From assembly GCA_964188305.1 (NCBI GenBank), contig OZ076886.1: 64,000 bases of DNA. One strand, written 5' to 3'. Under the pieces are notes generated by a model. It was not told the DNA's origin. It ran no database searches and was given only the letters and a program-made list of their open reading frames with translations. Made by a program: the position numbers and the translations under genes. This DNA is from Podarcis bocagei (lineage: Eukaryota). Below, in pieces: positions 10,604 through 54,162 of this stretch (within the stretch, counting starts at the first letter, position 1; each line of letters opens with the position of its first letter).

Positions 10604-10811
10604 TATCTAAGGCAGTGTTTCCCAACCGGTGTTCCGCGGCACAGTAGTGTGCCGCCGGACGTTGCCTAGTGTTCCGCGTGGAGGCGGCCGAGTCGGGCGG
10701 TGAGAGGCGGGGCGGCGGCGGCGAGCACACGCGGGGCTGCGAGCGAGCGAGCTCCCATATCCCATCGCCGCTCGCTACTGGCCCTGCGCATCCGCTCGCT
10801 ACTGGGCCTGC

Positions 10812-11015
10812 CCCAGGAGGTGGGGTTGCGGGGAATCCCATCCGGGGAATCCCATCCGCCCCCACGTGAGGGGGAGTCCCATCTCAGCCCCCGCGAGAGC
10901 AGGGGAATCCCATCCGGCCACGCCTCCTGGCCAGCCAATCGGCTGGCTGGAGGGGGCGTGGCTTGCCCTTTTTAGGGCCGGAGCAGAGGGGGCTCGCCCT
11001 CTCTTCTCCGGCTAG
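10812..11015 (+). promoter_or_regulatory. Promoter-like GC-rich cargo: clustered kappaB-like sites, E-box, CCAAT and GC boxes
   Basis: GGGGAATCCC at 10830, 10844 and 10902; GGGGAGTCCC at 10871; CACGTG at 10863; CCAAT at 10935; GGGGGCGTGGC at 10952. Confidence 0.5.
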
Positions 11016-11106
11016 CCCCATCGCCGCTCGCTATCGCCGCTCGCTACTGGGCCTGCGCCTGCTCGGCAAGCACACGTGGGGCGGCGAGCGAGCGAGCTCC
11101 CACATC

Positions 11107-11314
11107 TGACGGCACCAAGCAGGGGCCCTTGGCCGTGCCGGTGCCCACCGTGCCCGCCTCCGCCCAGGAGGGCGGCAAGCAGCCACCGCCACCCCCGCCG
11201 CTGCCCGGCAACCGCGCCGCCACCCCCGGCTACCCGCGGCGGGTGATCGTGCAGGCTTCGACGGGCGAGCTGCTCCGCTGCCTGGGGGACTTCGTGTGCC
11301 GCTGCTGCTACCAC
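11107..11314 (+). pseudogene. CDK5R2: Captured internal coding fragment of CDK5 activator p39
   Basis: Translates [16 protein letters not shown]...[10 protein letters not shown]...[27 protein letters not shown], matching recalled CDK5R2 ([10 protein letters not shown]; [26 protein letters not shown]). No start codon, truncated, and inside the hAT TIRs. Confidence 0.9.
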
Positions 11315-11949
11315 ATCGCCGCTCGCTACTGGGCCTGCGCGTGCGCGATCGCGCCTTCGGGATTCCCTTCAGCAGGCATCAAGCAGCCTGCCTCCCTGCT
11401 TTTTCTAATTAAGGGAACCTCCACTCTCCTGCCCCTCGGTGTTTCTCACCCCAAAGCCTTGTGGGCAGCAGGAAGTGGGGCTGTCCTGCCTCTACCCCAC
11501 GCCGGGTGGCTGCTGACACGTCCCTTGGGCAGGAGAGGCATCCGGCTGGATGAAGGCAGCGACGCCGGGGGAACGGAACAGCACGGCAGGTGTGAGTTGG
11601 CGCCTGGAAGGACACAGACTGCTTCATGTAGCTGCATTCAACAGCTCCGAGGCTGGCAGGTGAGTGCGTGCACTCCTCTCTCTCATTTTATTTAATGTGC
11701 ATTTTAGAAGCATGTGGAAATATCCTGCGTCGTCAACCACTTTGGGGAAAGTGTGCGTGTGTGTGTTTGGGGCTAGATTTCATGCATGCCTTTTTTTTTT
11801 AAGTTCTCTTCCTGCTTCATCCACATTCACCCCCCAAAAGGCCATTTTCTGTGTGCTGAATAAATTATGCAACTCAAACGGCACGAGGTGCCAATGCATC
11901 GGGGCTGTGGAATTTATTCTGCTTGCAGAATTCTGCAACTCAACCGCAT

Positions 11950-12145
11950 TTTGATGTTTAAATGTTGTATTTTTATCTTGTTTTTAAGTTATATTTCAAT
12001 CAACCTGTTTTTTATTATTGTTTTTATTTCAGTCGACTTATTTTTTATTTTTTATTATATTTCAGTCGACTTGTTTTTTAATTTGTTGTTAGCCGCCCTG
12101 AGCCCAGTCTTGGCTGGGGAGGGCGGGGTATAAATAAAATTTATT
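11950..12145 (+). mobile_element. LINE-like (L2-type) 3' tail embedded in the hAT 5' arm
   Basis: T-rich tract, then GTTAGCCGCCCTGAGCCC...GGGAGGGCGGGGTATAAATAAA. Confidence 0.5.
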
Positions 12146-12750
12146 TGGGAAAGATGGTTTAGGTATGTCCAAGCAGGCTTGATAGCAAAAACTGTTTCTC
12201 ACAAACTTAACAGCGTATACAGACAGTGGCCTTATTACAGTCTTTTTCAACCGCTGTTAGTGTTTTTCAACCTTTTTAGGTTTTCTGTAAACTGGGGAAC
12301 ACATCCATGTTGGAAGTTCAATTCCTTGCTTAGCCATGAAGCTCAATGGAAATTGCCTTGCTCTTGCCCTCTCTAATCCAGTGTTTCTCAACCGCTGTTC
12401 CGCGGCAGTGCCTCGGGGACCTCGTGGCTTCCGCTATTGCGTGTGCTGCCGTCACTCTTCCCGCCATTCCCATGTATAATTCGTGCCCGTAATACAGGCA
12501 GTAAGAACTGTTCTGTATAACGACTACCCCGCCTCTCCCACCCCATATAAGCCCATTTTTTTTCCTTTGCAGAAATGAGCCGCTGAATTGAGCTCACACA
12601 GTATGCATGTTTTTGCCTGGCTGTGATTGGTCCGGACTCAAGCCTTGACCTATCACAGTGGGACATCATCTTCCGACTTCCTTCCCGCCCGAGCACAGAG
12701 ACCAGGACCCAGCGGGAGTCGGCACCGCAGAGAGGCCGGATACTGGAGTG

Positions 12751-14631
12751 ATGGAAAAGTTTTTGAAAAGAAAAGAACTGGACTCTGAACAAAATTTGGA
12801 GCCAGATGAGAGGCCAAGTACGAGTGGGCATGAAAAGAAAGCAAAGATGGATAGCTCAAGCAAATTCTCTGTCACAAGGCAATATAGCGAAAGCTATATT
12901 TCATTTGGATTTACTTTCACCGGAGATGCAAACCAACCAACTCCACTGTGCGTGGTGTGTGGTGAAAAGCTAGCTAACAGTGCTATTGTGCCAAGCAAAC
13001 TTAAACGCCATCTCCAAACGAAACACCCTTCGCTTAAAAACAAGAATGTGGACTATTTTGTTCGCCTGCGTGAAAACACGGAGAAACAGGCAACTCTCCT
13101 GAGACAAACCTCAAAGGTAAATGAAAGAGCTCTTAAAGCTAGCTATCACGTTGCTGAACTTATAGCCAAGACAAAAAAGTCGCACACTGTGGCAGAGACA
13201 TTAATACTTCCCGCCTGCAAAGCTATTGTGGAGGAGATGCTCGGACCTGAAGCAGCTAAGGAAATAGCCAAGGTCCCTCTCTCAAACAACACAATTTCCA
13301 GACGTATTGATGACATGTCTGCAGACATTGAAAGTGTGGTTTTGGAAAAGATCCATAGTAGTGAGAAATTTGCATTACAACTGGACGAGTCTACTGATAT
13401 CAGTGGACATGCTCAACTCTTGGCCAATGTGCGTTTTGTTGATGGTGATGCAATTAGAGAAAACTTCTTTTTCTGCAAGGCATTGCCAGAAAAAGCAACA
13501 GGAGAAGAAATTTTTCGGGTCACATCAGAATACCTTGAACAAGGAGGACTTAAGTGGGAAAACTGCATAAGTGTCTGCACCGATGGAGCTGCAGCCATGG
13601 TCGGGCACACCAAAGGCTTTGTAAGCAGAGTGAAGGAAAGAAATCCAAATGTTATTGTTACGCATTGTTTTTTGCACCGTGAGACCCTCGTAGCCAAGAC
13701 TCTACCAGCAGACCTAGTTCATGTGTTGGATGATGTTGTGCGCATGGTAAACTTTGTAAAGTCACGACCCGTGAAAAGTCGCATATTTGCAGCCTTGTGT
13801 GAGGAGATGGGAGCGAAGCATAAAACCTTGCTGTTTCATACGGAGGTCCGGTGGTTGTCGCGTGGCAAGGTCTTGGTTCGTGTGTATGAGCTGCGGGAGG
13901 AACTTAAAGTGTTTCTGACAAATGAGAGGACAGATTACGCAAAGCTGCTTGCAAGTGATGAATGGTGTGCAAGGCTGGCATACCTGGCAGATATATTTCA
14001 TCATCTGAATGAACTGAACACACGAATGCAAGGCCGAAATGAAAACCTGCTTACAAGTACAGATAAAATAAATGGATTCCGTGCAAAGCTGCAACTCTGG
14101 CATCAACACGTGGAAAGTGGCAATCTTGAAATGTTCACACTCACCAAGCAATGGCAAGGTGTTCACACTGCTGCACTGTGTGAGATAATAGCTAAACATT
14201 TAAAAACTCTCGAGGGGAAGTTGTCATTTTATTTCTCTTCAGTCTCCACTGAATGCCTTGACTGGGTTAGGGACCCTTATAGCTCAGCATCAGTTGGTGG
14301 AAAGGACATGACTTTACAGGAGCAGGAGGAACTAACTGAACTGAGACAAAATCGTGGTTTCAAGCTAAGATTTGCTGATCTACCTTTGGACAGTTTTTGG
14401 TTGGAAACTGCCAAGGAGTTCCCCCTTCTGGCAAACAAAGCTATTTTGACATTGCTCCCATTTTCCACTACATATCTCTGTGAGTTGAGCTTTTCAAGCA
14501 TGATTGCTATAAAAACTAAATACAGAGAGAGACTGAGAGCTGTTGACGAAGAGCTACGTGTGTGTCTTTCTTCGATTCCAGCCAGAATATCAGCTTTGTG
14601 TTCAGCCAAACAGGCCCAGGTTGCGCACTGA
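12751..14631 (+). CDS. hAT transposase, Buster/Charlie family (ZBED5/SCAND3/FAM200-like), 626 aa from first ATG
   Basis: Uninterrupted ORF with BED zinc finger (CVVC...HLQTKH), catalytic D (QLDEST), D (CTDGA), CxxH (HCFLH), RW (VRWLS) and catalytic E in the C-terminal region (YLCELSFS). The ORF track starts at a GTG at 12658; the first ATG is at 12751. Confidence 0.95.
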
Positions 14632-15190
14632 ATCAAGTATTTTATAATTTTTCATATTTCTGTTTACTTACCATTTCATAATAAAGTAATTATAAAATAC
14701 TTTCTTTGTGTTTATTTGATTCCTATTAAAGAGAGTTACTTTATATATAGTCAATATAGGCAAAGAGTTAATTTTTAAAACATTTTCTAATGGTGGTGTG
14801 CCTCGAGATTTTTTTCATGAAACAAGTGTGCCTTTGCCCAAAAAAGGTTGGGAAACACTGATCTAAGGGGCTGTCACATGGAAGATGGAGCAAGCTTGTT
14901 TTTTCCTGCTCTGGAGGCTAGGACTGGAACCAATGGCTTCAAATTACAAGAAAGGAGATTCCCACTAAACATCAGAAAGAACTTTATGATGATAAGAGCT
15001 GTTTGACAGTGGAACAGACTCCCAGGAGAGGTGGTGGACTCTCCTTTATTGGAGGTTTTAAAGCAGAGGATCTGCCTTAGATGCTTTAGTTGAGATTCCT
15101 GCATTACAGGGGGTTGGACCAACTCTATAATTCTCTGATTCAATGAAAACAACAATGATGTTTAAACATCCAATACAGTTACAGAATCTA

Positions 15191-15553
15191 CCGTATTTTT
15201 CGCTCTATAACATGCACCAGACCATAACATGCACGTAGTTTTTAGAGGAGGAAAACAAGGAAAAAATATTCTAAACGAAATAGTGGATATATGATTTTTG
15301 TGGTTCATCCTGTGGCCACAGACATGTGATCTGACAGTGAGTTTTGAGTAGCCCAATGCAAAAATCCTGAGGATCCATGTGGATCCACGTTTTGTAACCA
15401 CGAAGGAGGAAAGGAAGGGGAACCATGGATCCTCTGCTCACCACTGCAGCAGATCCCCCCGCCACCCGCAGGCATTCGCTCCGTAACACGCATAGACATT
15501 TCCCCTTATTTTCTAGGAGGAAAAAAGTGAGTGTTATGGTGCAAAAAATACGG
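15191..15553. mobile_element. TA-targeting MITE with CCGTATTTTT termini (Tc1/mariner superfamily)
   Basis: TA-CCGTATTTTTCG ... AAAAAATACGG-TA. Confidence 0.8.
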
Positions 15554-15751
15554 TAATCTAAACTGGACCTTATCTTATAGATGCAGTTTGTGGAACTGTA
15601 TAGATTTTACATAAGAGGCCTTTGTGTTTTAGACTACAGCCACGCTTGCACCTTGCATTTAAAGCACACTACTCTAAACAGTCAGGACTTCCCCCAAAGA
15701 TTCCTGGGAACTTTAGTTTATTAAGAATATGGGGATTTCTTAGGACAACCC

Positions 15752-16067
15752 TGTCGCGTATTCCACGCGGCGTTTTCAGCAAAACACTTAAGAGTTCCAG
15801 GTTTTTCAGTGCAGTCCTTTTTAATGTGAGCTATATACAGGCATTTACAAAAGAAACAGTCCATACAGAGTACTTACAAACGAATACTCTCCACCACAGC
15901 ACCACCACACTACAGCACAACCACCACACCCCCTGTTAAACAGGCTTTCCTTTTTAAAACAGCCAATTACACTAATCACACTCCTGCTGAGTCACTCTGA
16001 CCCAGCAGAGTATTGCATCATCCTGTTGAAGCCTGCAGACTTATCCAGTATCCTGCGAATCCCAACA
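15752..16067 (-). repeat. 3' LTR of the copia element
   Basis: 316 bp, preceded on the minus strand by the polypurine tract AAGGAGGAG (16068-16076), which overlaps the stop codon. Confidence 0.95.
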
Positions 16068-16074
16068 CTCCTCC

Positions 16075-19000
16075 TTAAGTCAAAGGCTTGAGACCCAATA
16101 ATTCTCTTAAGTCTCGAAATTTAGGAGCATCCAAACATTTTGTATACAAATCTGCCACATTACATTTTGTGTTACAGTGCTGTACCTTTAACACATTTCT
16201 TTCCAAAGCATTTTTCACATTTCCGTATCTTATCGCAATATGTTTACTCTTGCTCTTAAAGTTCTGTTGGTTGGCAAGCTGTTGTGCAGCCATGTTGTCA
16301 CTTAGCACAGTGATTGGCATTTCAGAAGGTATTCCAAGCTCTTTTGTTAGGCAAGCAAACCACTCTATTTGTGATACACATTCGCTTATGGCTGAGTACT
16401 CTGCTTCACAAGTACTTGTGGCAACAAATGTTTGTTTCTGGGATTTCCACTGAACCAGGGCATTTCCAATATATATGGCATAGCCAGTGGTAGACTTTCC
16501 ATTTTCTCTGTCTCCCCAGCTGGCATCAGCATATGCATACACTTGCTGATCATGTCCTGTATCCAGCACCAGTTTGTAATCTTTTGTGCCTTTCAGATAC
16601 CTTAGGATTCTTTTAAGTGCTACCCAATCTCTCTGAGCCGGGTCTGCACTTCTTTGGCTTAACATGTGCACTGCCAATGTTATGTCGGGTCTTGTCCAAC
16701 AACTTAAATATAACAGAGAACCCAACAGAGAATGAAACGCTGTTGCATTCTCACATTTTTGCCCTTCTGGTTCATTTTTGTACTGGGTAGTTATGGGAGT
16801 GTCAACCTCATTTGCCCTCTCCATTCCATATGTCTTCAGTAACTTTTCGATTTTTTCCTTCTGACTCAGAGAGTAAATGCCCTCTTCATTTCTCTGAACC
16901 TCTACTCCTAAGTAATTTTGAATCTCTCCCAAATACTTCAGTTTGTATTTGTTACCTAGGCTGTTTATAAACCAAGACACTTGCTTTTGTGCAGTTGTTA
17001 TTAGACAGATATCATCAACATACAAAAGTAAATAACAAACACTTCCTTGCACCATTGCTGAATATAAACAGGAATCAGCCAGGCTTTGTTTGAATCCCAT
17101 CTTTTTCAAAGTTGTGTCTATGCATTCATGCCATAGACGTGCACTTTGGTGTAAACCGTATAGTGCCCTTTGCAGTTTTAACACCATGCTGTCTTTTTCT
17201 AGCTCATAACCTGGTATTTGCTGTAAATATACCTCGGCGTCAATAGGAGCATTTAAATATGCTGAGGCAACATCAAAATGATTAACTTTTAACCCTCTCA
17301 GACTTGCCATTGCTAAAACTGATTTTACTGTTTCAGCCTTTGCTGTTGGGGCAAACACTTCATCATAATGTATCATTTTCCTCTGTGTAAAGCCCCGTGC
17401 AACCAACCTGGCTTTCCTCTGACAACTACCATCAGCCAGCTTTTTCACTTTAAAAACCCACTTACAGCTTATGGGCTTTTTACCTTCAGGCAATTCTGTA
17501 GGTACAAACACATTGTTGTTTAGCAGAGAGTTATACTCTGCCTGCATTGCCTTTAACCACGCCTCTTTCTCTAGAGTAGGTAACTCTTGCACTTCTTCAA
17601 AGTTTTCTGGCTCAGTTATACAAACCTGGTTTATGGTGGCTGGGAACCCATAACGGTCTGGAGGTTGACCTTTATTACTTCTTGCAGACCTCCTTGGTTC
17701 ATTAATCTCACCCCCTGGGCTACCTTCAGGACTGCTTTTGGGGTGGATTGACTCTGGAGATCTACCTCCTCCTGTCCCTGTTGCACTTTCTTCTCTCCCC
17801 TGCTCCATGCTAGCAGCTGGAGAAAAATGCTCAACCTTTACTTCCTCCCTTTCAGTTTCTCTGGGAGAGCTGCCAATTCTTAGCTTTGTTTCAACTGCCT
17901 TATTAGGTATGCTCGGCAGTAAAACTTTTCCTGGCAGCAGGTTTGCATGTATCTTGGGCCAATTTCTTTGCTCATTAAAGCTGGCTGATCTACTATAACT
18001 CAAAAGGTTTTTATCATCTTCAAACCTATAGGCTTTCGTACCACTTTCATACCCAAGAAATAGCAACTGCTGTGCCCTTTTCCCACCTTTTCTTCGGTTT
18101 TTCACAGGTATGTCAACCCATGCCTTTGTCCCAAAGATTCTTAAATGTTGCAAACTGGGACTTTTATTATAGAGAATTTTATAGGGTATGTCATCTAGTA
18201 CCCTTGACCACAAGCGATTCCCAATATAATTTGCGGTCTTAATACTTTCAGCCCAGTACTTAATTGGAAGATTTGCATCTGCTAACAATGCTTTCATTTG
18301 TGTCTGCAAGACACCTCCCCTACGCTCTGCTACTCCGTTCTCCTGAGGCGTGGCCACATTGGTAAGCCTATGTTTAATCCCTTGGGAATGCAACCAGTTT
18401 CTTAGGGAGCTTGCCATAAACTCCCCTCCCCTGTCTGACTGAATAGAGCACACCTTTTCACCAAGTTGCCTTTCTACCCTTCTTACCCAGAACTTCAAAG
18501 TTTGGGCAACGTCAGACTTTTGCTTTAATGGATAGACCCAGCCAAATCTAGAAAAATCATCCACTAGGATCAAACAGTACTTGTTGTGGGAGACACTAGG
18601 TGGAAAAGGACCAGTTACATCAGCATGAATCAACTCCAGTGGTTTTTTGGTTTCTCTCTGGCTTGCTCTTGCTACTGGGCAAGCCCTGCTTTTAACCTCC
18701 TTGCAGATATTGCAGTCTAAGTAATTATCACAACTTTTTATGTTTTTCATCCCCCCACACAACTCCAATGTTTTGTTTAGCACCTTATAGCTAGCATGAG
18801 CCAGACGCCTGTGCAGGAGATGAATACACATATCATGGGTTGGGACATTTTGCACATTTGCAACCTTAGATTCACACTGCAGTACATACATATTAGTTCT
18901 AAGGCTAGCATTTGCCAACACTGCCCCATTTTGCTTTATCTGGCACTGATCTCCCACAAAATTTACTTCAAAGCCTGCCTTTGCCAAATCAGGAATGCTC

Positions 19001-20025
19001 AGGAGATTGTTTTGCAAACTAGGCACACACAACACATTCCTGAATGTGTGTCCCAGCTGTGGGAACACAACCTCCCCCTCACAAACCACATTAGCTTTCT
19101 GGCCCGTAGCAAGACTTACATGTTTTTTGTTTGAAGCCCTAGCATCAGTTAGCAATCCTTTTCTTTTACAAAAGGTTTGAGAAGCTCCACTGTCCAGAAC
19201 CCACAGCTCTTCCTTTTCTTGACTATCTGCAGACACCCAAGCAGTAGACTCTCTCTGCTGCCTCCTGTGCTTCTGCTGTTTTTGTTGTTTCCTCGGGCAG
19301 TCCCGCAGCAGATGTCCACTGGACTTGCAGCAAAAACACCTTTTTACTTTGTTGACCACCGGCTGGTCTGCAGCAGCTCCTCCTGGCTGTTTCTCCGGCA
19401 CCCGACACCTCTGCTCTTCCCGGCTGTTGTTCCCTCTGGGATGCTCCAACAGCTGGGCTGAGGTCATCTTTCGCTCTGCACGCCTGTCCTCCTCTGCATA
19501 CAACCGTCCGGTCATGTATTCCAGAGTCAGCTTATCAGTCTCTACAGACTCGAGGGAGTTGACCAGCATATCATAGCTGTCGTCAAGGGAACTCAGGACT
19601 ATAAAGACTTTGTCCTCTTCCCCCACAGGCCTCCCTCTTGAGGCTAGCTCCTGGAAACAGCCTGTTAGGAATTTTAGGTGGTTTACCAGGGAGTCCCCCG
19701 GTTTCTTCCGACACCGGTACAGTCTCCTGGTCAGTGTTATCAGTGAGCCAGCTGTCTCTCGCACATGGACAGCCTTGAGCGCATTCCACGCCTCACTTGC
19801 CGTCACCTTATCAGCTACGTAGACTAGCTGGCTGTCGTCCACTCCAAGGATGATCGTAGCCAAAGCTTTCTCATCCTTTTCATCCTCCTCAGGGGGCTGC
19901 GGTGGCTCTTCCACCACCTTCCACAGGCCCTCACGCTTGAGGAAGTGTTGCATGCGGACCGACCAGATGCTGTAGTTCGTGGCCGTCAGCTTCTCCAGCA
20001 ACACGCCAGTTCTGGACTGCTCCAT
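16075..20025 (-). CDS. Copia gag-pol polyprotein, 1316 aa
   Basis: Gag with CCHC knuckle (CFCCKSSGHLLRDC), protease (WVLDSGAS), integrase (HRRLAH, HADVTGP, SDRGGEF, NGVAER), RT (KARLVARGF, LYGLHQS, YVDD) and RNase H (YADASW, CEAEY, SDN), in the copia order PR-IN-RT-RH. Confidence 0.97.
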   Translation of the reverse strand: MEQSRTGVLLEKLTATNYSIWSVRMQHFLKREGLWKVVEEPPQPPEEDEKDEKALATIILGVDDSQLVYVADKVTASEAWNALKAVHVRETAGSLITLTRRLYRCRKKPGDSLVNHLKFLTGCFQELASRGRPVGEEDKVFIVLSSLDDSYDMLVNSLESVETDKLTLEYMTGRLYAEEDRRAERKMTSAQLLEHPRGNNSREEQRCRVPEKQPGGAAADQPVVNKVKRCFCCKSSGHLLRDCPRKQQKQQKHRRQQRESTAWVSADSQEKEELWVLDSGASQTFCKRKGLLTDARASNKKHVSLATGQKANVVCEGEVVFPQLGHTFRNVLCVPSLQNNLLSIPDLAKAGFEVNFVGDQCQIKQNGAVLANASLRTNMYVLQCESKVANVQNVPTHDMCIHLLHRRLAHASYKVLNKTLELCGGMKNIKSCDNYLDCNICKEVKSRACPVARASQRETKKPLELIHADVTGPFPPSVSHNKYCLILVDDFSRFGWVYPLKQKSDVAQTLKFWVRRVERQLGEKVCSIQSDRGGEFMASSLRNWLHSQGIKHRLTNVATPQENGVAERRGGVLQTQMKALLADANLPIKYWAESIKTANYIGNRLWSRVLDDIPYKILYNKSPSLQHLRIFGTKAWVDIPVKNRRKGGKRAQQLLFLGYESGTKAYRFEDDKNLLSYSRSASFNEQRNWPKIHANLLPGKVLLPSIPNKAVETKLRIGSSPRETEREEVKVEHFSPAASMEQGREESATGTGGGRSPESIHPKSSPEGSPGGEINEPRRSARSNKGQPPDRYGFPATINQVCITEPENFEEVQELPTLEKEAWLKAMQAEYNSLLNNNVFVPTELPEGKKPISCKWVFKVKKLADGSCQRKARLVARGFTQRKMIHYDEVFAPTAKAETVKSVLAMASLRGLKVNHFDVASAYLNAPIDAEVYLQQIPGYELEKDSMVLKLQRALYGLHQSARLWHECIDTTLKKMGFKQSLADSCLYSAMVQGSVCYLLLYVDDICLITTAQKQVSWFINSLGNKYKLKYLGEIQNYLGVEVQRNEEGIYSLSQKEKIEKLLKTYGMERANEVDTPITTQYKNEPEGQKCENATAFHSLLGSLLYLSCWTRPDITLAVHMLSQRSADPAQRDWVALKRILRYLKGTKDYKLVLDTGHDQQVYAYADASWGDRENGKSTTGYAIYIGNALVQWKSQKQTFVATSTCEAEYSAISECVSQIEWFACLTKELGIPSEMPITVLSDNMAAQQLANQQNFKSKSKHIAIRYGNVKNALERNVLKVQHCNTKCNVADLYTKCLDAPKFRDLRELLGLKPLT

Positions 20026-20078
20026 CCCTGCAGCTCACCTCCAGCACCCACGGCTAGATAACTGCCACCTGTACTCTT

Positions 20079-20109
20079 GCGCAGCGGAAGCGTGCTGGGC
20101 CCATAACCC
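20079..20109 (-). promoter_or_regulatory. Primer-binding site complementary to the 5' half of initiator tRNA-Met
   Basis: Plus strand reads GCGCAGCGGAAGCGTGCTGGGCCCATAACCC, equal to about nt 10-40 of recalled vertebrate tRNA-iMet. Abuts the 5' LTR. Confidence 0.9.
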
Positions 20110-20424
20110 TGTCGCGTATTCCACGCGGCGTTTTCAGCAAAACACTTAAGAGTTCCAGGTTTTTCAGTGCAGTCCTTTTTAATGTGAGCTATATACAGGC
20201 ATTTACAAAAGAAACAGTCCATACAGAGTACTTACAAACGAATACTCTCCACCACAGCACCACCACACTACAGCACAACCACCACACCCCCTGTTAAACA
20301 GGCTTTCCTTTTAAAACAGCCAATTACACTAATCACACTCCTGCTGAGTCACTCTGACCCAGCAGAGTATTGCATCATCCTGTTGAAGCCTGCAGACTTA
20401 TCCAGTATCCTGCGAATCCCAACA
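20110..20424 (-). repeat. 5' LTR of the copia element
   Basis: 315 bp, direct repeat of 15752-16067, adjacent to the PBS. Confidence 0.95.
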
Positions 20425-21082
20425 AACCCTACTGTCCTCACAGAGCTAGAATTCAGAGTTGTTTAATGCTCAGTCTCTCTTCCCAGGAAACGTTGGAAAA
20501 CGTAGCTCTCTGTGTGGGTGGGATAGAGGGTCTTCAAGCAACCCTTAGTGCCCTTTACAAATTGCAGTTCCCAATATTTTTTGGGGGAAGCTCAAACAAC
20601 TGATGACATTAAACAAGATTAATGAGCAGTGCTGGTGTGCAGAGGTGGGGAGGGAGTGGAGCTCCACTAAAGCCCACATCTATTGATTGGGCATGCTTGA
20701 TTCCTCTGCTTTTGCTGACATTGCAGTAATATATTCATGGCCCAGCAGGAAAAAAAAATGCATATTCTTAGAAGGAAATTGCTTTCTGTTATTTTCCATT
20801 TGTAAACAAGTGAAAGCAAGGCCCTATACCACTCTAGGTTTATTCACAGCACCAAAAGTCACTCAATGGTGGCTTCTTCACACATGCATCTTTCTCCCAC
20901 ATTTGCTCTGACCTGCAAAATGCAAATTCTAATTCAATGTATAAGGTATATGTATATTGGTAGTTGCGGCCTGACACATCAGCAGGCAGAACTCTTGAGC
21001 AGTGGCCGAGGGCGTGCCATTGCTGATGTTGCTCCCCTAGGCTGCCTTTTCCTGGTATTCTGTAGTGTGCTGGGCAGGAGTA

Positions 21083-21084
<2 letters not shown>

Positions 21085-21137
<53 letters not shown>

Positions 21138-21303
21138 TTATTATTTATACCCCGCCCATCTGGCTGAGTTTCCCCAGCCACTCTGGGCGGCTCCCAATCA
21201 ATGTTAAAAACAGTACAGCGTTACATATTAAAAACTTCCCTGAAAGGGCTGCCTTAAGATGTCTTCTGAATGTCAGGTAATTATTTATCTCTTTGACATC
21301 TGA
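21085..21303 (-). mobile_element. LINE 3' end (probably L2) with a (TTA)n tail
   Basis: (TAA)n followed by TTTATTATTTATACCCCGCCCATCTGGCTG...CTCTGGGCGGCT. A shorter copy lies at ~56432-56520. Confidence 0.6.
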
Positions 21304-21939
21304 GCCATTGGAACTGCTTGCAGTATTGCTTGTGGGCCATTACAGTGGCAGCTATTTAGCCTGTTTTGACCATGTGTCCTATTTCATTGAACATGAATGA
21401 CATCTGAAGGTGGCAGTCCTTGGGTGCCTAGGTAAAAGAGAGAATAGGGATCCTGAACCACAAAGAGCTCTGTTGGAAAAGGAATTCTATCCCATGCCTT
21501 TCCCCCGCAATCATACTTAGTCCACCAGCTAGGCAGTATGGTTCAACAGGCTGAAGGAGATGCAGGACCTAGGAGAGCTCCCAGTAGACTGCTTACATCA
21601 ATGAGGTCTGGCACTCAACTGAGGTCTTTTATATCCCTGTTGGGCCAGGCTCCCTCCACTTCCTTAAAGGGATAGTTCTCTGACCTGATGCCTGGCACTC
21701 CATTGCCTCTCAGTTAGCCCTCAACTTGTGCATTGCCTATGCTGGCAAGCAGGAACTGGAAAGCCTGAGGCTCCTAATTTAAAAGTTCCTCAGAACTCAG
21801 TGGTTGCTGTTTCATGGGGTCTTGGCCTCAAGGGACTCCTACAGTTTAGGCTTGTTTTCTGCCCTAAGTATGCCCTCTCAAAGCTGGAAATGGCTTTTGG
21901 GGGCTGGCTCATGGGTATTTATTTTAGCCTACCACTAGA

Positions 21940-22066
21940 TGCTGGCCACGTGACCCGGAAGTGTCTTCGGACAGCGCTGGCCCCCGGCCTCTTAAGTGAG
22001 ATGGGCGCACAACCCTAGAGTCGGACACGACTGGCCCGTATGGGCAGGGGTACCTTTACCTTTACT
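21940..22066 (-). mobile_element. Partial Sauria-type SINE
   Basis: Ends in GGGGTACCTTTACCTTTA with AGAGTCGGACACGACTG, the reverse complement of a Sauria SINE head. Confidence 0.6.
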
Positions 22067-22365
22067 TACCACTAGATGCACCCCTTCGGTATCAAAAGGG
22101 ACACCATATTCTTGCCCAGTTCCCTTTTTTTTCTTTCTACAATAAAGTTGGTGCTGACCTTTCCATAGTGAGGAGGCTTGCACATCAATAACCAATAAAA
22201 CATTCTAAAATAGCTTTGTAATTTTTTTTTAACAGTACTTTGCCCTTTTATGGCCTGAAATGCAGGATTTATGTGAACTTTTCCTAGCATGCAGACAGAA
22301 TAGGAGGTAAAATGCCACCTGCTTCAGCTCTGTATATCAGGTTGCTAATAAGCCATGGAAATGGA

Positions 22366-22367
<2 letters not shown>

Positions 22368-22405: not shown

Positions 22406-22407
<2 letters not shown>

Positions 22408-31314: not shown

Positions 31315-33046
31315 CTCTCAGAGGCTGAGGCAGGCAAGGGCCACAGGTGGGGCTTGCCAGCTCTGGGAGGAGGGGTGTGATTCCTCAGCTGGAGTAGGCT
31401 CAGAACAGGTGAGGGTCACATCAAGCCCAGGTGCTGCAATCAGCATGCAAAGCACAAAAGGGAAGCAGAGCTGAGGTGATGTGTCTGCTCAACTGCCCGT
31501 GCATGTTGGAAAAGGTAGATGGATTTATTTATTTTTTGCAGAAATTACTTCTTTGCACAAATAATCATGCCTTGGTTAGTTGGAAATGGCAAAAAAAAAG
31601 AGGACCTGCAAAAAAAAAAAGTTCCTATTAACTTTAAAATGTTTGAAGAGGAACATTTCAGGCTGCAATAGTAAGGCATGCTTGGACAGACCTTTTAAGA
31701 AAAACGGGAAAGTTGTTTTAGAACGTAATTAGAATGCAAGACTGAGTTGCACATTTGTCTCTCCCACCCACCCACACCTTAAACAGAATCCACTGTGACA
31801 TTTGGGAGCCCACTGGCTTCTGCTGCACGCTGCCTTCCTCCAGCAGGTGTTGGTTATGCTGTCACATTTGATTAGCGTGGTGAGGATGAAAAGTCACATC
31901 ATGCAAGACAACATTTTGCTGTTGTCAGGGTAAGGAGAAGCAACCTTTACAAGTTTGGGTGTATTTTTTTAAAAAATGCAGAACATTTCTCCTTATTCAG
32001 ATAGTTTAGGAGACATGAAATGTATTTGGATTGAAGGGGCACACAGATAAAAGGATTCTGATGCCAAAGAAATAGGGGTCCTGCCCAAATCACCTTCTTT
32101 TCATATGGTCCCTCTTCCCTGCATTATTTTCCGCTATTATTTCCCCCTGTAAGAACCTAATAAGAGCCCCGCTGAAGCAGACCAATGGTCCATCAGACCC
32201 TGTTCTCAGTTTCCAGCCAAATGTGTAAGGGAAGTCCACAATCAGAGATTTGCTCTTTCCCCATTGGTGCTCCCAAACAACTGATATTCAGACGCATACC
32301 ACCTATGATGCTGGAGGTAGTATATTTCCATCATGGCAAGAAGCCTCATCTTCCATAAAATCAATTTTAAAGCTGTGCAAGCTGACAACTATTACTGCAT
32401 GTGGCATGACTCCTTTCTTTTTGAAATTCATTGACTGCACATTGTTGACCTTTCTGTTGCTACAAATTTCCCTGTATCATGCAGAATTAGGTACTCCAAA
32501 ATGTCTCGGAATCGATTGGCTTAGGTGAGGTTCACTGTGCATGTGTCAGGATGTAAAATGTCCAGAACCTTGTTTTCTTTAAAAAGGGATGTGTGTGTGT
32601 TGAAATAAGTCACTGCAGCAACAACATTTAAGCGTAAACAGTGACAGTCTTTGTAAAGTGAATAACAAAGAGGTTGACTATTTCCCAAGAAGTCAAATTT
32701 CACAACTGGTTTCCAGATTCTGTGCACTGGGAACAGGTCCATGAGGGATTGATGACCTTAATCATGTCCTCCTTGTGAGATTCCCGCAGCAGGTCATGTG
32801 AGACTCCCTATGGGTAGAGGCAGTTTTAGGGCAGCACAACCAGTTTGGCCGCACTGGCTGCTGCACTGCAGGGGGCACCACAACAATGCTGTAGAATGGA
32901 ACATGAGAGGCCGGGTGGCGGGTAAATTTTAGTGTCTCAGAGGGTGCTGCTGAAATTGGAGAGCCCAACATCCACAACTGCTATGGGAGACAGAATGCGG
33001 GACAAGGTGGCCTGATTCAGCAAAACAGTTCTTATTTTCTTAAATA

Positions 33047-33272
33047 CAGTGGTACCTCGGGTTAAGAACTTAATTCGTTCTGGAGGTCTGTTCTTAACCT
33101 GAAACTGTTCTTAACCTGAGGTACCACTTTAGGTAATGGGGCCTCCCACTGCTGCTGTGCCGCCGCAGCACGATTTCTGTTCTCATCCTGAACCAAAGTT
33201 CTTAACCCAAGGTACTATTTCTGGGTTAGCGGAGTCTGTAACCTGAAGCGTCTGTAACCCGAGGTACCACTG
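33047..33272. mobile_element. Tc1/mariner-type MITE (CAGTGGTACCTC family)
   Basis: TIRs and TA TSDs; near-identical to the 7615 copy. Confidence 0.85.
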
Positions 33273-48200: not shown

Positions 48201-48269
48201 TTCTGATGCATTGTCTCATGCAGCACTTCGCCAATGGAAAAGTCAGCACGGCAACACCCAAGGACTCTG

Positions 48270-49010
48270 ATTTTTTTTTTAAAAAAAGATTTTCTTGTTT
48301 TATAGAAGTTTGTGCAATGTCTCTCGTATTTTTCCCATGTTACATTTTTACAAATCAGTTTCATTTGTTGAGACATTAGGGGGAAATAAGGGGTGGAGGG
48401 GTGGGGGAAGATGGGTGGGGGTGGGGGTGGGGTCGGGTAGCGATGTTTCTATTTTGCTTAATGTATGTAGGGTTTGGTGTCAGCGTTGCTTGTGCAGGTT
48501 CTCTGCTGTTCATTTGTGTTTCTTTGGTGGTGAGAGAGGTTGGGGTTGGCCTAGGGTGTGGTTGTTTGCTTGTGATTGGCTATAGTGATCTTTGTTTTCG
48601 TGTGTGAGTGGGGTGGGTGGGTGTTTTGGATCAGGTTAGCCATATTGATTTGTATGCTGTTGGTGGATTATTGTCATTGTCTTGTTGGGTTGTGTATGTG
48701 ATAAAGGGGAGCCATACCGGGGTAAAAGCGTCTTCTTCTGTTTGTCCCTGTGTCATTTTCAGTTTATTGGTTGATTTTACTAGTAGGACTGTTTCCCATA
48801 CTATTTGGTACCATTGGTCCATGCTTACTCCTGACAGGTCTCTCCAGTGTCTGGTTATGGTGTTTCTGGCTGCTGAAAGTAGGTGGGGTATGAGTTTCCT
48901 GAGGACTCTGATGAATGTGATGAGTGGGAAGAAGAGGGCATGGATCAGAACCCACCCACCCAAGCTTTTTCAGCTGGGACTTTCTGTTGAAACTGTGGGA
49001 ATGTTCAGGG
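48270..49010 (-). mobile_element. Degenerate L1-type LINE 3' fragment
   Basis: Minus-strand peptide LLSAARNTITRHWRD...QWYQIVWE...VWLPFITY resembles an ORF2 C-terminus, followed by a 3' UTR and an A-rich tail. Boundaries approximate. Confidence 0.6.
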
Positions 49011-49535
49011 AGGCAGGAGAGGATATATTGTTTAATTATATCCTTCCCAACTTGTGTTAACAAGTTCTACAATATAGCAGAGTAACATTCCCCTTTTTAA
49101 ACTTGCACAGTGGATGTCTTTGCCTGGCTTGTATAAACCTCTAAAATAAGTTTCCTTGGTAATTCCCCTTTATTCCCTCATAAAAAGATAGACAAAACAC
49201 AGTCTTGTATAAAAGTATATAAAATAGTTTACTCACATTCTGTTCACAAATGGATCCCAGAAGGCAGACTTAAGTTACAAAATATATACACCTAGAATCT
49301 ATCTCAGTGTTTCCCAACCGGTGTTCCGCGGCACACTAGTGTGCCGCGAGACATTGCCTGGTGTGCCGCGGGAGGGAGGCGGGCGAGTCGGGAGGTGAGA
49401 GGAGAGGCCGCCCAGCGCGGGGCTCTCGCCGTCTGCCTGCCTGGCTGCCTGCGTGGCGCTGACGTCCCGGGGCTGTAACGTGCCCCACATAGGCACACGC
49501 GGGGCGGCGAGCGAGCTCCCTCCCACATCCCATCG

Positions 49536-49915
49536 CCGGCTCTGCACCAGGCGGTAGAGCTCGGCGAAGTCGCCGCGCTGGAAGGCCAGCAGCGCGCGCG
49601 CCTTGGCCAGGCTCTCGCCCGCCTGCGCCTCCAGGCAGGGCGCCTCGGCGTCAGGCGGCAGCGAGCCCAGGAAGCGGCTCAGCCGGTCGGGGTCGCCCGC
49701 CTGCAGCAGCGCCTCGCACACGCACGAGACCTGCTCCGCTGAGAAGCGCGGCGAGCGTGGAGGATCGGGCGCGGCGGAGGCTAGCCCCGCGCTTGGAGAG
49801 GACGCAGCAGCCGTCGCCAAACCCGATCCTCCTCCTCCTGCTCCGCCGCCGTCCTCTGGCTCTCGGCCGGGAGGAGCCTGCGGCGACAGGGCGGGCGCCG
49901 AAGTTGGCAGAAGTT
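49536..49915 (-). pseudogene. SIX5: Captured SIX5 exon-1 fragment A (first part of the SIX domain)
   Basis: Translates PRFSAEQVSCVCEALLQAGDPDRLSRFLGSLPP...ARALLAFQRGDFAELYRLVQSR, matching recalled SIX5 (RFSPEQVACVCEALLQAG...RLSRFLGALPP...ARALVAFQRGEYAELYRLLESR). Truncated; no homeodomain. Confidence 0.9.
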
Positions 49916-50113
49916 ACGCTACGCCACTGCCTAGGACTCAAGCCGTCACCTGGCTTGTCGTCGTTGCTTTACTTTCCGGGCGGAAAGACAGGAGGGTTGA
50001 TCATCTTGCTGGAGTCTGGGCTGCTTAGCGTCGCCCCAGGAAAAGTTTGCTCGGGAGGAGGGGAGCCGCGCGGAATTCAAGCGCGCGCGCTTCCGTGCCT
50101 CGCGCAGCGCAAC

Positions 50114-50126
50114 TTTGCGCGGGAAA
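50114..50126. promoter_or_regulatory. E2F binding site in the captured E2F5 upstream region
   Basis: TTTGCGCGGGAAA contains the canonical TTTCCCGC on the minus strand, ~420 bp upstream of the E2F5 ATG. Confidence 0.55.
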
Positions 50127-50541
50127 TGTCCCCGAGTGAGTGAAAACACCACTGCCGGGCACTTCGAAGGCCCCTTTTTCACCCTCCCCGCCCCGTTTGC
50201 TGCTTCGTTTCCCCCCGGGGGCGAGAGAGGGGCGCAACCACCCCGCAACTCTCTCCCCTCAGGCTCCACCTTCTCGGGAAAGGAGCAGCTGCCCCCTTTC
50301 CTCTGGCTCTTCCCTACACAAAACTTTGTCTCCCGGCAACTGCGCGGGCGGCGTCACTTCCTCTCCCTGCAGGCCAGCCGGCGGTGGGCGAGAAAAGGAC
50401 GAGGGCTCGCTCTTGTGTCTCCGCGGGGCAGCTGCTCCGCGCGGGGACCAGCCGGGCTCCCTCGCGGCCGGAGGAAGGGCAAGCCCGGGGGGGAGAGGGC
50501 CACGTGGGGCCGCCGGAGGAGGTGGGTGGGGGGGATGCAGC

Positions 50542-50733
50542 ATGGCCGCGGTGGCGCTGCCCGAGTCGGTTTCCAGTAGCCATGGCGGCGGCGTGGGGAG
50601 CCTGGAAGGCGGTGCGGGCACCGGGGGCGCCAGCAGCAACAGCAGCCGGCATGAGAAGAGCCTGGGGCTGCTCACCACCAAGTTCGTGTCCCTCCTGCAG
50701 GAGGCCAAGGACGGCGTGCTCGACCTGAAAGCG
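50542..50733 (+). pseudogene. E2F5: Captured E2F5 coding exon 1, with upstream promoter/5' UTR and downstream intron-1 start
   Basis: MAAVALP...[31 protein letters not shown], followed by the donor GCG|GTGAGG at 50734. SSRHEK and LDLKA fit E2F5 rather than E2F4 (PSRHEK, LDLKL). No exon 2 seen in the window. Confidence 0.88.
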
Positions 50734-51003
50734 GTGAGGGGGAGGTGGGGGGCTTGGGTCCAGGCGCTGCGGGTGGGATCCGGGCGCGGAGGGAGGGGCG
50801 TGCATGTGCGTGTGTGTGTGAGACACACACACACACAACGTGGGGTGCGATGGCCCTTGAGGGATCCAGCGGGAGGATCTCTGGACTGGGATCTGGTGAG
50901 GGGAAAAGTTCCATGTTGGGAGTAGGCACCTTTTTAATAACCCACCCCTTTTCTTCAGGCTTTGGCGTATGTGGTTTTGCTGCCTGCCTGGCTGCCTGCC
51001 TGC

Positions 51004-51299
51004 GAGAAGCGCGGCGAGCGCGGAGGATCGGGCGCCCCGGAGGCCAGCCCCGCGCTTGGAGAGGACGCAGCAGCCGTCGCCAAACCCGATCCTCCTCCTC
51101 CTGCTCCGCCGCCGTCCTCTGGCTCTCGGCCGGGAGGAGCCTGCGGCGACGGGGCGGGCGCCGAAGTTGGCAGAAGTTGGCGCGCCTCCTCGGCAGCGCC
51201 TTCGTCCTCCTCCTCCTGCCTCTGCTCTCCTCCGGCAGCGGGGGCGTGCCGTCCTCCCCGGCCGGGGGGCTCGGCGGGGCCCGCGGGGAAGGAGGCCAT
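51004..51299 (-). pseudogene. SIX5: Captured SIX5 exon-1 fragment B (start codon and N-terminus); GC-rich sequence above 51299 is probably its 5' UTR
   Basis: ATG at 51299 gives MASFPAGPAEP...PAAGGE...EEEDEGAAEEARQLL...PRFS, resembling recalled SIX5 N-terminus (MATLPAEP...PAAGGE...EEEEEEARQLL). 51004-51178 duplicates 49741-49915. Confidence 0.85.
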
Positions 51300-54162
51300 G
51301 TTCACGGCGCACGGGATCGCGGCCCCCCTCGCCCACCTCCGGCCCCTTCCCCTCCCCCTGCGCGCTGCCCTAGCCGTGCGGGTCTCCTCCCCCTGCGGCG
51401 CAGTCCCCTTTCCACATCCTAGGAGCCGCGGTCCGCCTTCCGCCCCCGGGCCGCGGCGCGGCTCCCAGCCCGGGCTGGCCTCTGCCTCCTGGGACGCGTG
51501 CCCACCCCCGCGGCCCCCCAAACTTCGGAGCAACTCTCCAGACGCTTCTCCCCCGCCTCGGTCTCCCTCCTTTCCACTTCTCTTCCCCCCTTCCTTCCCT
51601 CTTTCTTTTTCTCTCCCACCCGTCTTTCCTTCTATTAACTTTCCTTTCCCCTTCCCATGTAGAACAGTCCCTGCAAATAAAAACCTAGCATATTTGGAAG
51701 AGGGATGCTAGCCTAACCATTACCTTCTATGCTGTTACTATTTTTTTTTTTTTTTTTACATAAGTAAAAAGTGACCTTTCCCCATCTGGCATGGTGGTGT
51801 GCCTCGAGATTTTTTACATGAAACAAGTGTGCCTTTGCCCAAAAAAGGTTGGGAAACACTGATCTATCTCATAAGGAGATAGTTCTTTTGTCCTCTCTTG
51901 GCTGCAAGCTAAGGCTAAGAAGATGTTGCTTCTTCGAGGAATGGAGTCAGAGAGAGAGATGGCTGCCTCCGCTGAGGTATTTTGTTACCTGCATAGGTGA
52001 GGTCACACCCACCTCTGGTCACATGTAGAAGAAGTCTGTCCCAGCCCAGGAGGAAACAGGAAGTTCTGACTGGCTGGTCCAGACATCCCCTTTTATGTCC
52101 ACTCTAGGAATGTTATATTTGACTGCTCTGTGTTTCACATCCCACAGAAACCTTGGAGGCTCCCTCTTCTTCAACTCAGGATGAGGAGGCAGGCTAGGGG
52201 ACAGGAGGAAGCCCATAGCACTGTTTGAGCTGTCAGGGGAAGAGGACAGCTAGGCATTGTCTCCGAGACAACTAGGAGGCTACATTAGCTTCTTTTATTT
52301 TCCCCATCTAACTACTATTTACCTTGCTGTTCTGTGAGTGGGAAGCTGGCTGAACCCCTGTCTGAAATCCAGGAGAGATGCTGATATGATAGTCAGTGCA
52401 GACAATATGGAGTTAGATGGACCAATGGTCTGACTCAGTGTAAGGCAGTTTCCTATGTTGTACCCAGAAAGTTCTGAGAATGAGTGTTGGTCTCTAATAC
52501 AACCTTGCACTTCAAACCCCTTCCGTATATGGAATTCCAAGCAGGCAAGTGAGAGGACAGAAAGAGGAGAGGCGGAGTGCTCCATTCCTCATCCACTAGG
52601 CCACTTTGTTTCTGTCACTTCCTCTGCCGCTAGGACAGACATGCCGTGGGCTGATAGAAGGCCTTAAAAAAAATGGCATTAGCCTATTAATAGGCTAGTA
52701 GCCGCCATTTCCAATCTGCCACTAAAAGAGGGAGTTTCCTCTGTCCTGTGGCTAGCCTGGAAATTCAGGCTATTAGCCTGTTAGTAGGATAGTTATTTAC
52801 TTGTTTATGTATTGCTGGCTAGCAGCTTTTGTGGGCTTGTTTACAAAAGCTGCTGTCATAAAAGCAAAACAACCAAGCTGATCAAAACATTTTTTTTCCA
52901 GATATGTTAAATAGCCCTGAAAAAATGAAGGTTAGGAAGGATAAAGTATTTGCTCAGTATTTGCTCATTCTTTTCTGCCCTGCTTATTTGCATAAATTGG
53001 GCTTCTTAGCACAATTTGCATAATCAGGCATGTAGTGTACAGCCTCTAGTCCTCCAGGCTAATTTGTATGCTTAAAGAAGCATTTTTTTTAATCAATCTG
53101 TTGATTATGCATATGAACCTAGTGAATTGTGACTGCAAAATCCATCTGGACAAAGGGACACGGAAATGAACACTTTCCTTCTGTATAAGATTCATTCTCC
53201 CAAACCAGCAATTGTCACTGTGAGATATCTTAGGTACTCCTATGTCTATAAAAGTCCATTTTTATATTTTGCTCAGACTTTTCATCGTACAGCTGTGTAG
53301 CTTTCTTTATTGCTTAATTTTATTGGTTCATATCTAATGGGAACTTCTAGTTCTCAAATTTAGCTTGGCATTTATGTTTGTTTTTTAAAATGATTTTTAT
53401 TAACAATATTCTTGGTTAATGTATGTATATTTGTGTCTGTGTGTCCATGTTGTTGTAGTGACTCTTTTAAGCGGTGGGTGAAAGAAATTAGTAAATGTCA
53501 GTGGCTAACTTGTCCCAGCTCAATAAAACTGCCCTGCCCTGCTTGCTACATGAAAGGAGGTGGTAGGTTTTGAGCAAAACTGGGCACTCAAAAGAAGCCA
53601 AAATATGCTGCTAAAATATTCACAGTGCTCTGACAGCATTTTCACTTGTTTGCCTAATTTCTGTATTAATTTCCTGCAGAGTGTAGGAGAAGAAAATTTA
53701 ACTTTATGAGAAAGACAGGATGTCTTTTACACTTGCAACCCCTTTATCCTGGAAGCCTTTGCTGCTGTGAATGCTTGAGATCGATCCTGGGATCTTCTGG
53801 CATGCTAGGCTTGTGTCACAGGCCTGAGATGCTCTCTTGTCTCCCTTTCCATGCTAAAGTACACAACTATTGCTAGGGCTAGAATGATAAATCTCTAGAT
53901 CTGTGCTTGGGTGACTTGTGGTAAGCCACTGTAGCAGAATTACAAGTGTCTGAGCATCCTAACAAAGGGACAAGGTATTCTGTGGAGATAGCATCTCAGG
54001 GTCACATGCCAGTAGAGTGGAGAAACATTCAATTCACCTGAATGTAGTTAACTAAAAGTGGGCAATGAAAGCGGTTAGGTGCTAGCCTGTGAGGCAGCTA
54101 AACCAAGTTGGTTCAGCTACTTTGTTAAAGAGTTCAGGCCTTGAGTTAAAGTCAAGATTTCT

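Follow-up and report, generated by a model that had tools for sequence, protein, structure and literature searches.

The window analysed here, a stretch of 64,000 nucleotides from the lacertid lizard Podarcis bocagei (contig OZ076886.1 of assembly GCA_964188305.1), contains two transposons, referred to as element 1 (10613-14860) and element 2 (49305-51861), whose interiors hold pieces of host genes. We consider it likely, at a probability of roughly 80%, that both belong to a young lacertid family of Buster-clade hAT transposons into which host DNA has been copied repeatedly, and that the loaded copies were moved by the transposase of the family. The two elements had been singled out by a sequence-only reading as members of a gene-capturing, Pack-type hAT family; the observation itself is confirmed, and the overall interpretation is supported and largely right. 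In the model that we propose, members of the family would keep a 5' end of ~70-100 nt, a 3' end of ~71-75 nt and, in autonomous copies, the transposase, while the region from the 5' end to the start of the transposase (the whole interior in non-autonomous copies) would serve as a cargo zone. Host DNA, mostly as GC-rich promoter and first-exon fragments, would have been copied into this zone on repeated occasions. The coordinates of the individual parts are collected in Table 1.

The ends of both elements are well defined. The 15-bp terminal inverted repeat (TIR) CAGTGTTTCCCAACC is perfect at 4/4 element ends (10613-10627 and 49305-49319 on the plus strand, 14846-14860 and 51847-51861 on the minus strand), in line with the short TIRs of hAT transposons, and a fifth copy with one mismatch lies inside element 1 (12379-12393, plus strand); these 5 matches in the window compare with 0.09 expected. 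Each element is flanked by a perfect 8-bp target-site duplication (TSD) of its own, ATCTAAGG for element 1 (identical at 10605-10612 and 14861-14868) and ATCTATCT for element 2 (identical at 49297-49304 and 51862-51869). The 5' end is common to both over 95-98 nt (88% identity), the 3' end over 71 nt (98.6%), and one short GC-rich internal unit is shared as well; beyond these, neither the repeat families nor self-BLAST gave any sequence common to the two elements. The earlier description of a common TIR with ~95 bp of 5' end, ~71 bp of 3' end and a separate perfect TSD for each element is thus accurate. Its division into autonomous and non-autonomous copies applies to element 2, which has the family ends and no transposase, but element 1 is not a simple autonomous copy, as it carries cargo and a 35-nt internal fragment of the 5' end. 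Strictly speaking, the term Pack element fits element 2 alone, since element 1 codes for a transposase and is better described as autonomous, with three pieces of transduplicated cargo.

The nearest named relatives of the 626-aa transposase of element 1 are all ZBED5-like or SCAN domain-containing protein 3-like (SCAND3-like) proteins, found in many animals. Local Pfam matches were weak (zf-BED, E 0.044; Dimer_Tnp_hAT, E 0.19; zf-C2H2_12, 1.6e-4), PF05699 is precomputed for some close homologues, and a sequence search against the PDB gave no match. An AlphaFold (AF2) model was built on 27 homologues (pLDDT, the predicted local distance difference test, 79.7), and in a Foldseek search of the PDB its top 12 matches were all Hermes, with E values down to 3e-11 over ~500 residues. 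We therefore assign the hAT fold from the structure search, which matched Hermes where the sequence searches were empty or weak. Across the 27 homologues, C67, C70, H87 and H92 (a CCHH set) are invariant, as are D212, D278 and E578, which probably form the catalytic triad.

Eight independent insertions of the family were read in five species: the two of the window, three from P. muralis, and single copies from Zootoca, the gecko Eublepharis and the snake Thamnophis. Of these, 8/8 have a perfect 8-bp TSD of the form nTnTAnnn, with TA at positions 4-5 and T at position 2 in every case. The TSD consensus of TcBuster is nnnTAnnn (PMC3499496). The 8-bp TSDs, the Hermes-like predicted fold and the ZBED5/SCAND3-like relatives support the earlier assignment to hAT, and the TSD pattern and the named relatives, rather than a reference tree, point to a Buster-type member of this superfamily. 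Like the Buster-clade hATs (TcBuster, AeBuster and SPIN, and the domesticated ZBED5 and SCAND3), the lizard family combines an 8-bp nnnTAnnn TSD and short TIRs with a ZBED5/SCAND3-like transposase and a very high identity across distant hosts. The lacertid (12751-14631), gecko (L010 3989-5888) and snake (L011 3989-5883) copies agree at 95-96% of positions in their transposase DNA, and the protein cluster formed at 90% identity also holds sequences from frogs, snakes, a salamander, a caecilian and a spider. This conservation and the breadth of the cluster indicate that the transposase family has been transferred horizontally, as in SPIN and Buster elements; the family resembles SPIN (Space Invaders) in its distribution across distant hosts.

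The cargo consists of recognizable gene fragments. The interior of element 2 matches Pfam E2F_TDP (E 8e-5), and its E2F5 piece (49923-50980) aligns over its full length to the E2F5 locus of P. muralis (L005 4378-5440) at 95.3% identity with gaps and 2.5% substitutions, with 3.3% and 4.5% substitutions to the E2F5 loci of P. lilfordi and P. raffonei; its exon-1 peptide is identical to that of P. lilfordi E2F5. Since the promoter and part of intron 1 are kept, collinear with the parent, the piece was copied as DNA and is not a retrocopy. Element 1 matches Pfam CDK5_activator (E 1.4e-8, 11129-11330, plus strand), and this cargo aligns within the one exon that codes for P. muralis CDK5R2, at L009 3277-3499, with 3 mismatches and two in-frame gaps; the encoded protein is 88% identical to P. 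muralis CDK5R2. The third gene is represented in element 2 by a match to Pfam SIX1_SD (E 7e-15, 49540-49820, minus strand), with SIX5 of a snake, tuatara and a marsupial as the best named relatives. The interiors had been said to hold pieces of CDK5R2, SIX5 and E2F5, which holds at the DNA level for CDK5R2 and E2F5 and at the protein level for SIX5.

Copies of the parent genes exist elsewhere, as a capture by copying demands and as the sequence-only reading had proposed to verify: E2F5 was located in three Podarcis genomes and CDK5R2 in P. muralis, where the two lie on different chromosome records (OZ076961.1 and OZ076954.1, respectively). Self-BLAST found no cargo-like sequence elsewhere in the window that could represent a parent in cis. 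The GC content reaches 62-76% in the GC-rich parts of the cargo, and the ratio of observed to expected CpG is 0.74-1.0 in the identified gene pieces versus 0.25 in the rest of the window. The earlier reading spoke of captured CpG-island pieces, but the CDK5R2 piece, although GC-rich, comes from inside the coding sequence and is not a 5' CpG island.

Loaded elements were also found at other loci. In P. muralis, positions 8135-12339 of locus L008 (OZ076960.1) are collinear with element 1 at 97.9% identity and carry all three of its cargo pieces (A, CDK5R2 and C); this copy has its own TSD, GTGTAAGC, lies within an intron of a POU2F1-like gene and has flanks unrelated to those of element 1. Here, too, the transposase open reading frame (ORF) is intact; compared with element 1, it has 10/1878 nt changed (99.5% identical). 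As 7 of these differences are synonymous, the autonomous lineage may recently have been under selection for a working transposase, although the numbers are small. A search of 1.8 billion proteins with the SIX piece gave, as its best match, the gene model A0A670I980 (P0271) of P. muralis. In this model an unbroken 5' region of SIX5 is followed by unit a/b, by insert X and by the 5' TIR, beyond which it runs into a flank unlike that of element 2. This model spans window positions 51632-51003 and 49913-49323 as one uninterrupted stretch, has the duplicated 58 residues once and lacks the E2F5 piece; being uninterrupted and having these residues singly, it represents a SIX5-only form from which element 2 can derive.

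The occurrence of the element 1 cargo set at L008, with a different TSD and unrelated flanks, and of the SIX5 cargo joined to the same transposon end beside another flank in P0271 (where no TSD was seen) shows that these loaded forms moved after capture. Among the copies examined, no further locus with the E2F5-bearing form of element 2 was found. The proposal that each element moved as a unit with its contents is therefore borne out for the element 1 cargo set and for the SIX5 cargo, but the form with E2F5 is seen at one locus only.

Comparison of further copies shows how variable the cargo zone is. The gecko copy (L010 3606-6058, 2453 bp), which we take as the canonical form, has none of the lacertid cargo pieces between its 5' end and the transposase, and it resembles the lizard copies only in the first ~70 nt, from 15 nt before the ATG onward and at the 3' end; across the transposase region it is 95.8% identical to the lacertid sequence at the nucleotide level. 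The first ~70 nt of the element 1 5' end are common to the gecko, snake and Zootoca copies. In the same position between 5' end and transposase, the Zootoca copy (L004) has a 1.4-kb piece that includes a signal-peptide-like first exon, the snake copy (L011, 2786 bp) a promoter-like piece of its own that includes a splice donor, and the P. muralis copy at L003 (OZ076955.1) a different piece again, which occupies the place of cargo C. A non-autonomous sibling in P. muralis (L008 12983-14973, 1991 bp, TSD GTCTATTC) has a GC-rich, tandemly repeated interior unrelated to the cargo of the other copies. A stretch related to insert X of element 2 adjoins the 3' end of this sibling.

The arrangement of the cargo offers some indication of how it may have entered. 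Two GC-rich backbone units, unit a (GCACACGCGGGG..GAGCGAGC..TCCCACATC) and unit b (CCATCGCCGCTCGCTACTGGGCCTGCGC), occur in both elements of the window and also at L003 and L008 of P. muralis. They recur three times around the cargo of element 1, in the order a b / A / b a / CDK5R2 / b, and the CDK5R2 junctions have 2-5 nt in common with the backbone. In element 2, the presence of SIX5 twice, as already reported, is confirmed as a repeat of ~175-186 bp (49730-49915 and 50995-51178, 96-97% identical). This duplication brackets the E2F5 piece, with 7 unmatched nt left of it and a 20-nt copy of sequence from the same element on its right. From the recurring units, the duplication and the fillers, we infer that the cargo was acquired by template switching during break repair. 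A nested transposon was considered as the source of the E2F5 piece and rejected, as neither TIRs nor a TSD-sized duplication surround it.

Under this mechanism, a strand synthesized during repair or replication would switch templates serially, either in synthesis-dependent strand annealing after excision or upon fork stalling. The nascent strand would leave its template, copy DNA from elsewhere and re-enter upstream of its exit point, and short microhomology in the GC-rich, repeat-prone backbone would aid the switch. The fillers of Ac/Ds and P elements and the animal Pack-TIRs have been explained by a comparable process. It is plausible that the (GGC)n and (GAGC)n runs of the backbone act as the stalling site. 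In element 2, the cargo derived from the 5' end of SIX5 would later have been split by the promoter, exon-1 and intron piece of E2F5, and loaded elements would afterwards have been mobilised by the transposase of the family. TcBuster prefers transcription start sites and CpG islands (PMC3499496), and a similar preference in the lizard family could be the reason why such DNA is the usual donor.

Captured sequence may also be used in transcription. The NCBI gene model LOC144328279 (P0422) on L008 has a host exon spliced into cargo A, continues through the CDK5R2 piece, and uses the donor of cargo C (window 11659/11660) and an acceptor ending at window 12572, shortly before the transposase. In two Logan contigs (L001 and L002), a CpG-rich first exon located just inside the 5' end of an L003-like copy is joined to the transposase exon, with 348 and 668 bp skipped relative to that copy. 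The inner region common to the Podarcis autonomous copies (12227-12750), which has the 35-nt 5'-end fragment at 12379-12413, falls within the intron deduced from L001/L002 and from the P0422 model. Should L001 and L002 prove to be mRNAs, the TIR fragment inside the element would be part of an intron, and the transposase would have the captured CpG-rich exon as its promoter. Captured CpG-rich first exons and their splice donors are probably used for transposase expression and for chimeric transcripts. Both A0A670I980 and LOC144328279 appear to be P. muralis gene models that read through loaded transposons. This is a likely annotation pitfall, and some of the "CpG islands" in Podarcis-type genomes may be transposon cargo.

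Several points weigh against the interpretation of a mobile, gene-capturing family. The junction microhomologies are short and may be due to chance, the identification of the SIX piece as SIX5-like comes from protein comparison only, and the support for the cargo junctions is indirect: in a search limited to 49886-49952, one of the 2 words sampled, a 31-mer across the junction of SIX5a and E2F5, occurs in sequencing runs of two organism labels from two studies, which is weak evidence. The age of the E2F5 capture is not readable from its divergence, as the cargo is as distant from each of the three Podarcis parents (2.5-4.5%) as these parents are from each other (2.7-4.4%). Furthermore, one of the two junctions in L001/L002 lacks a canonical GT donor in L003, and these contigs could be deleted genomic copies rather than mRNAs. 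Finally, the 35-nt internal 5'-end fragment follows repeat-like host DNA and could mark an event involving a composite of two elements.

This last point leads to an alternative that we regard as improbable, in which two nearby elements, or one element and a stray end, were co-mobilised as a composite of the macrotransposon type and the cargo is former flanking DNA. Element 1, L003 and L008 do hold the internal 5'-end fragment (window 12379-12413), the sequence before it is repeat-like and ends in CTCTAATC, which fits the target pattern of the family, and at L008 family elements are clustered within a few kb, so neighbouring ends exist. However, no internal 3' end was found in the element, and the inner fragment retains 35 nt of the end only, followed by sequence that is not canonical. 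The cargo pieces are also short (205 bp to ~1 kb), apparently come from different genes and lie in both orientations, the located parents are on different records (CDK5R2 on OZ076954.1, E2F5 on OZ076961.1), repeated backbone units enclose every piece, and a composite does not predict the ~175-186 bp duplication around E2F5. A two-element composite may nevertheless have given rise to the inner region with the 35-nt fragment.

Slightly less probable still is gap filling in place, whereby the cargo, or at least the E2F5 piece, was pasted into a resident immobile element at a chance break and the loaded form never moved. Most of the 370 animal Pack-TIRs of Tan et al. (2021) are single-copy and fit gap filling (PMC8277862), and the E2F5-bearing form is seen only in the window, P. 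muralis P0271 being without E2F5. Against this stand the element 1 cargo set and the SIX5 cargo, which occur at other loci with other flanks, and the autonomous copies, which are intact and nearly identical; that the SIX5a/E2F5 junction word turns up under two organism labels would be expected equally with or without movement of the loaded form. As GC-rich CpG islands are difficult to assemble, we also considered that collapsed or chimeric contigs might have joined transposon ends to GC-rich 5' ends of genes. Misassembly is very unlikely, though, because both elements are flanked by perfect 8-bp TSDs and the same structures occur in independent assemblies: one independent assembly of P. muralis has the cargo in the same order, as does a gene model based on an older assembly, and the junction 31-mer is found in independent runs.

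We see the lizard elements as a vertebrate counterpart of the plant "Pack" transposons; the animal Pack-TIR is the kind already known that comes closest to them. In a survey of 100 genomes, Tan et al. (2021) found 370 animal Pack-TIRs, 208 of them hAT and only 4 multicopy; nearly all were single-copy, which was ascribed to in-place gap filling, and the only lizard genome included (anoCar2) had none (PMC8277862). The same authors proposed template switching with microhomology (gap filling, FoSTeST) and reported chimeric transcripts with host genes (PMC8277862). The lizard family resembles these animal elements in being bounded by TIRs and TSDs, in its hAT affiliation, to which most of them also belong, and in containing copied host sequence. 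It differs in that several members have different cargo, loaded forms occur at different loci, a two-gene chimera coexists with its precursor form, and autonomous copies are themselves loaded.

Plant Pack-MULEs (rice, Arabidopsis) and Pack-CACTA likewise have common ends with diverse interiors, a bias towards GC-rich 5' parts of genes, and multi-gene chimeras. In these plant elements, genes are captured at the DNA level with introns kept, and loaded copies amplify. They are Mutator or CACTA rather than hAT elements, differ in TSD length and kingdom, and have very long TIRs in the case of MULEs, but in behaviour the lizard family is closer to Pack-MULEs. Bat Helitrons are rolling-circle elements that acquire DNA by read-through transduction and have no TIRs or TSDs. 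In vespertilionid bats, this family of vertebrate DNA transposons gathered and spread many promoter and exon fragments of the host (PMC4224331). The lizard family, in contrast, is of the cut-and-paste type with internal, filler-type cargo. When Ac/Ds and P elements excise, repair of the break can leave the element internally deleted or duplicated, or can add short fillers whose templates lie nearby or at ectopic sites. Such fillers show the same junction anatomy as the lizard elements, but they are usually short and derive from the element or its flanks, whereas the lizard cargo comprises 0.2-1 kb pieces from unlinked genes. The proof of gap filling for P elements is cited in PMC8277862. In the literature searched, no report was found of gene capture by hAT elements in lizards or in lacertids generally, nor of gene capture by Buster-type elements.

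Animal Pack-type transposons have so far mostly been described as rare, single-copy, immobile accidents. If our interpretation is correct, a vertebrate family that repeatedly captures, joins and moves gene pieces, including copies with an intact transposase, would be of a different kind. It would constitute a natural system for exon and promoter shuffling and for the seeding of new CpG islands, and it would open capture by cut-and-paste elements to direct study, with the SIX5-only and the SIX5+E2F5 forms as a pair of precursor and derivative. A more far-reaching picture, which we hold tentatively and think somewhat less probable than its negation, is that of a horizontally spreading Buster-type hAT with a swap zone behind its 5' end that has become, in lacertids, a serial collector of CpG-island promoters and first exons. 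Autonomous copies would express the transposase from a stolen promoter, exon and donor in each new host, while non-autonomous copies would scatter modules and chimeras. Since the family passes between species and its loaded autonomous copies are intact, such elements could even ferry fragments of host genes from one species to another. The scattered modules, CpG-rich and apparently undecayed, would then make this a vertebrate system on the model of the rice Pack-MULEs.

Table 1. Parts of the two loaded hAT elements and their target-site duplications (positions in the window; a dot marks features without a strand)
Feature	Position	Strand	Basis or remark
TSD of element 1, left copy	10605-10612	.	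TA at positions 4-5 fits nnnTAnnn
Element 1, 5' terminal region	10613-10718	+	TIR 10613-10627, then subterminal GTGT(G/T)CCGCG repeats
First copy of GC-rich backbone units a and b	10719-10811	+	repeat families, self-BLAST
Cargo A, promoter-like and GC-rich (CCAAT box, GC box, E-box)	10812-11016	.	in L008; not in element 2 or L003
Second copies of unit b, then unit a	11017-11106	+	repeat families, self-BLAST
Cargo B, internal coding fragment of CDK5R2 (p39), ~codons 93-166	11108-11312	+	Pfam and parent alignment
Third unit b, then shared backbone stretch with GCGC(A/G)TGCGC	11313-11382	+	common to L003 and L001
Cargo C, non-coding, first-exon-like with AT-rich intron-like part	11383-12226	+	splice donors after 11589 and 11659
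Inner region common to Podarcis autonomous copies	12227-12750	+	acceptors ending 12572 and 12734
Transposase ORF, intact, 626 aa	12751-14631	+	uninterrupted ORF; 98% identical to P. muralis proteins
3' untranslated and terminal region	14632-14860	+	AATAAA at 14680; last 71 nt common with element 2; TIR 14846-14860
TSD of element 1, right copy	14861-14868	.	same 8-mer as left copy
TSD of element 2, left copy	49297-49304	.	ATCTATCT
Element 2, 5' terminal region	49305-49410	+	TIR 49305-49319
Insert X, 82 nt, with TGACGTC like a cAMP response element (CRE)	49411-49492	+	alignment
Unit a and start of unit b	49493-49538	+	cargo junction inside unit b
SIX5a cargo, 5' coding part (start of SD domain) and upstream	49539-49915	-	SIX1_SD; collinear with P0271 residues 154-368
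7-nt filler between SIX5a and E2F5 cargo	49916-49922	.	comparison with E2F5 parent
E2F5 cargo, ~620 bp upstream, exon 1, ~250 bp of intron 1	49923-50980	+	ATG 50542, donor after 50733
20-nt filler, exact copy of 49433-49452 (insert X, element 2)	50980-50999	+	self-BLAST, 100% over 20 nt
SIX5b cargo, SIX5 upstream and first codons	51001-51640	-	collinear with P0271 residues 2-211
AT-rich tail with T-run	51641-51790	.	GC 37%, no CpG
3' terminal region	51791-51861	+	TIR 51847-51861
TSD of element 2, right copy	51862-51869	.	same 8-mer as left copy

A number of smaller observations concern the elements and their surroundings. Cargo A has a GC content of 70% and no Pfam match. Three copies of GGGGAATCCCATCCG, which resemble NF-kB sites, were read by eye within it (window 10812-11016), as were GGGATTCCC in the backbone (11350-11372), also NF-kB-like, and the backbone motif GCGC(A/G)TGCGC, which is similar to an NRF1 site. 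Other ORFs gave no Pfam match either, and the long GC-rich ORFs in element 2 were treated as chance ORFs. In P. muralis, L008 contains a further element of 136 bp (16045-16180), which has the 15-bp TIR of the family but differs in its interior and shows no clear TSD. Both extra elements of L008 lie <8 kb from the loaded autonomous copy, a clustering that would fit local hopping. At L003, a 2.85-kb insertion (11663-14516) breaks the transposase ORF.

Element 1 itself sits in a common lizard repeat (10238-10605; its families are also found at 33042-33093) that contains an 18-bp tandem repeat at 10346-10417. About 900 bp from element 1, on the minus strand, lies an apparent full-length retrotransposon of the Ty1/Copia type with long terminal repeats (15747-20424). 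It has an intact ORF for a 1316-aa gag-pol protein (16075-20025, minus strand; Pfam Retrotran_gag_2, rve and RVT_2), and its terminal repeats, ~320-bp direct repeats at 15747-16067 and 20105-20424, are 98-100% identical, so that this element appears to be very young.

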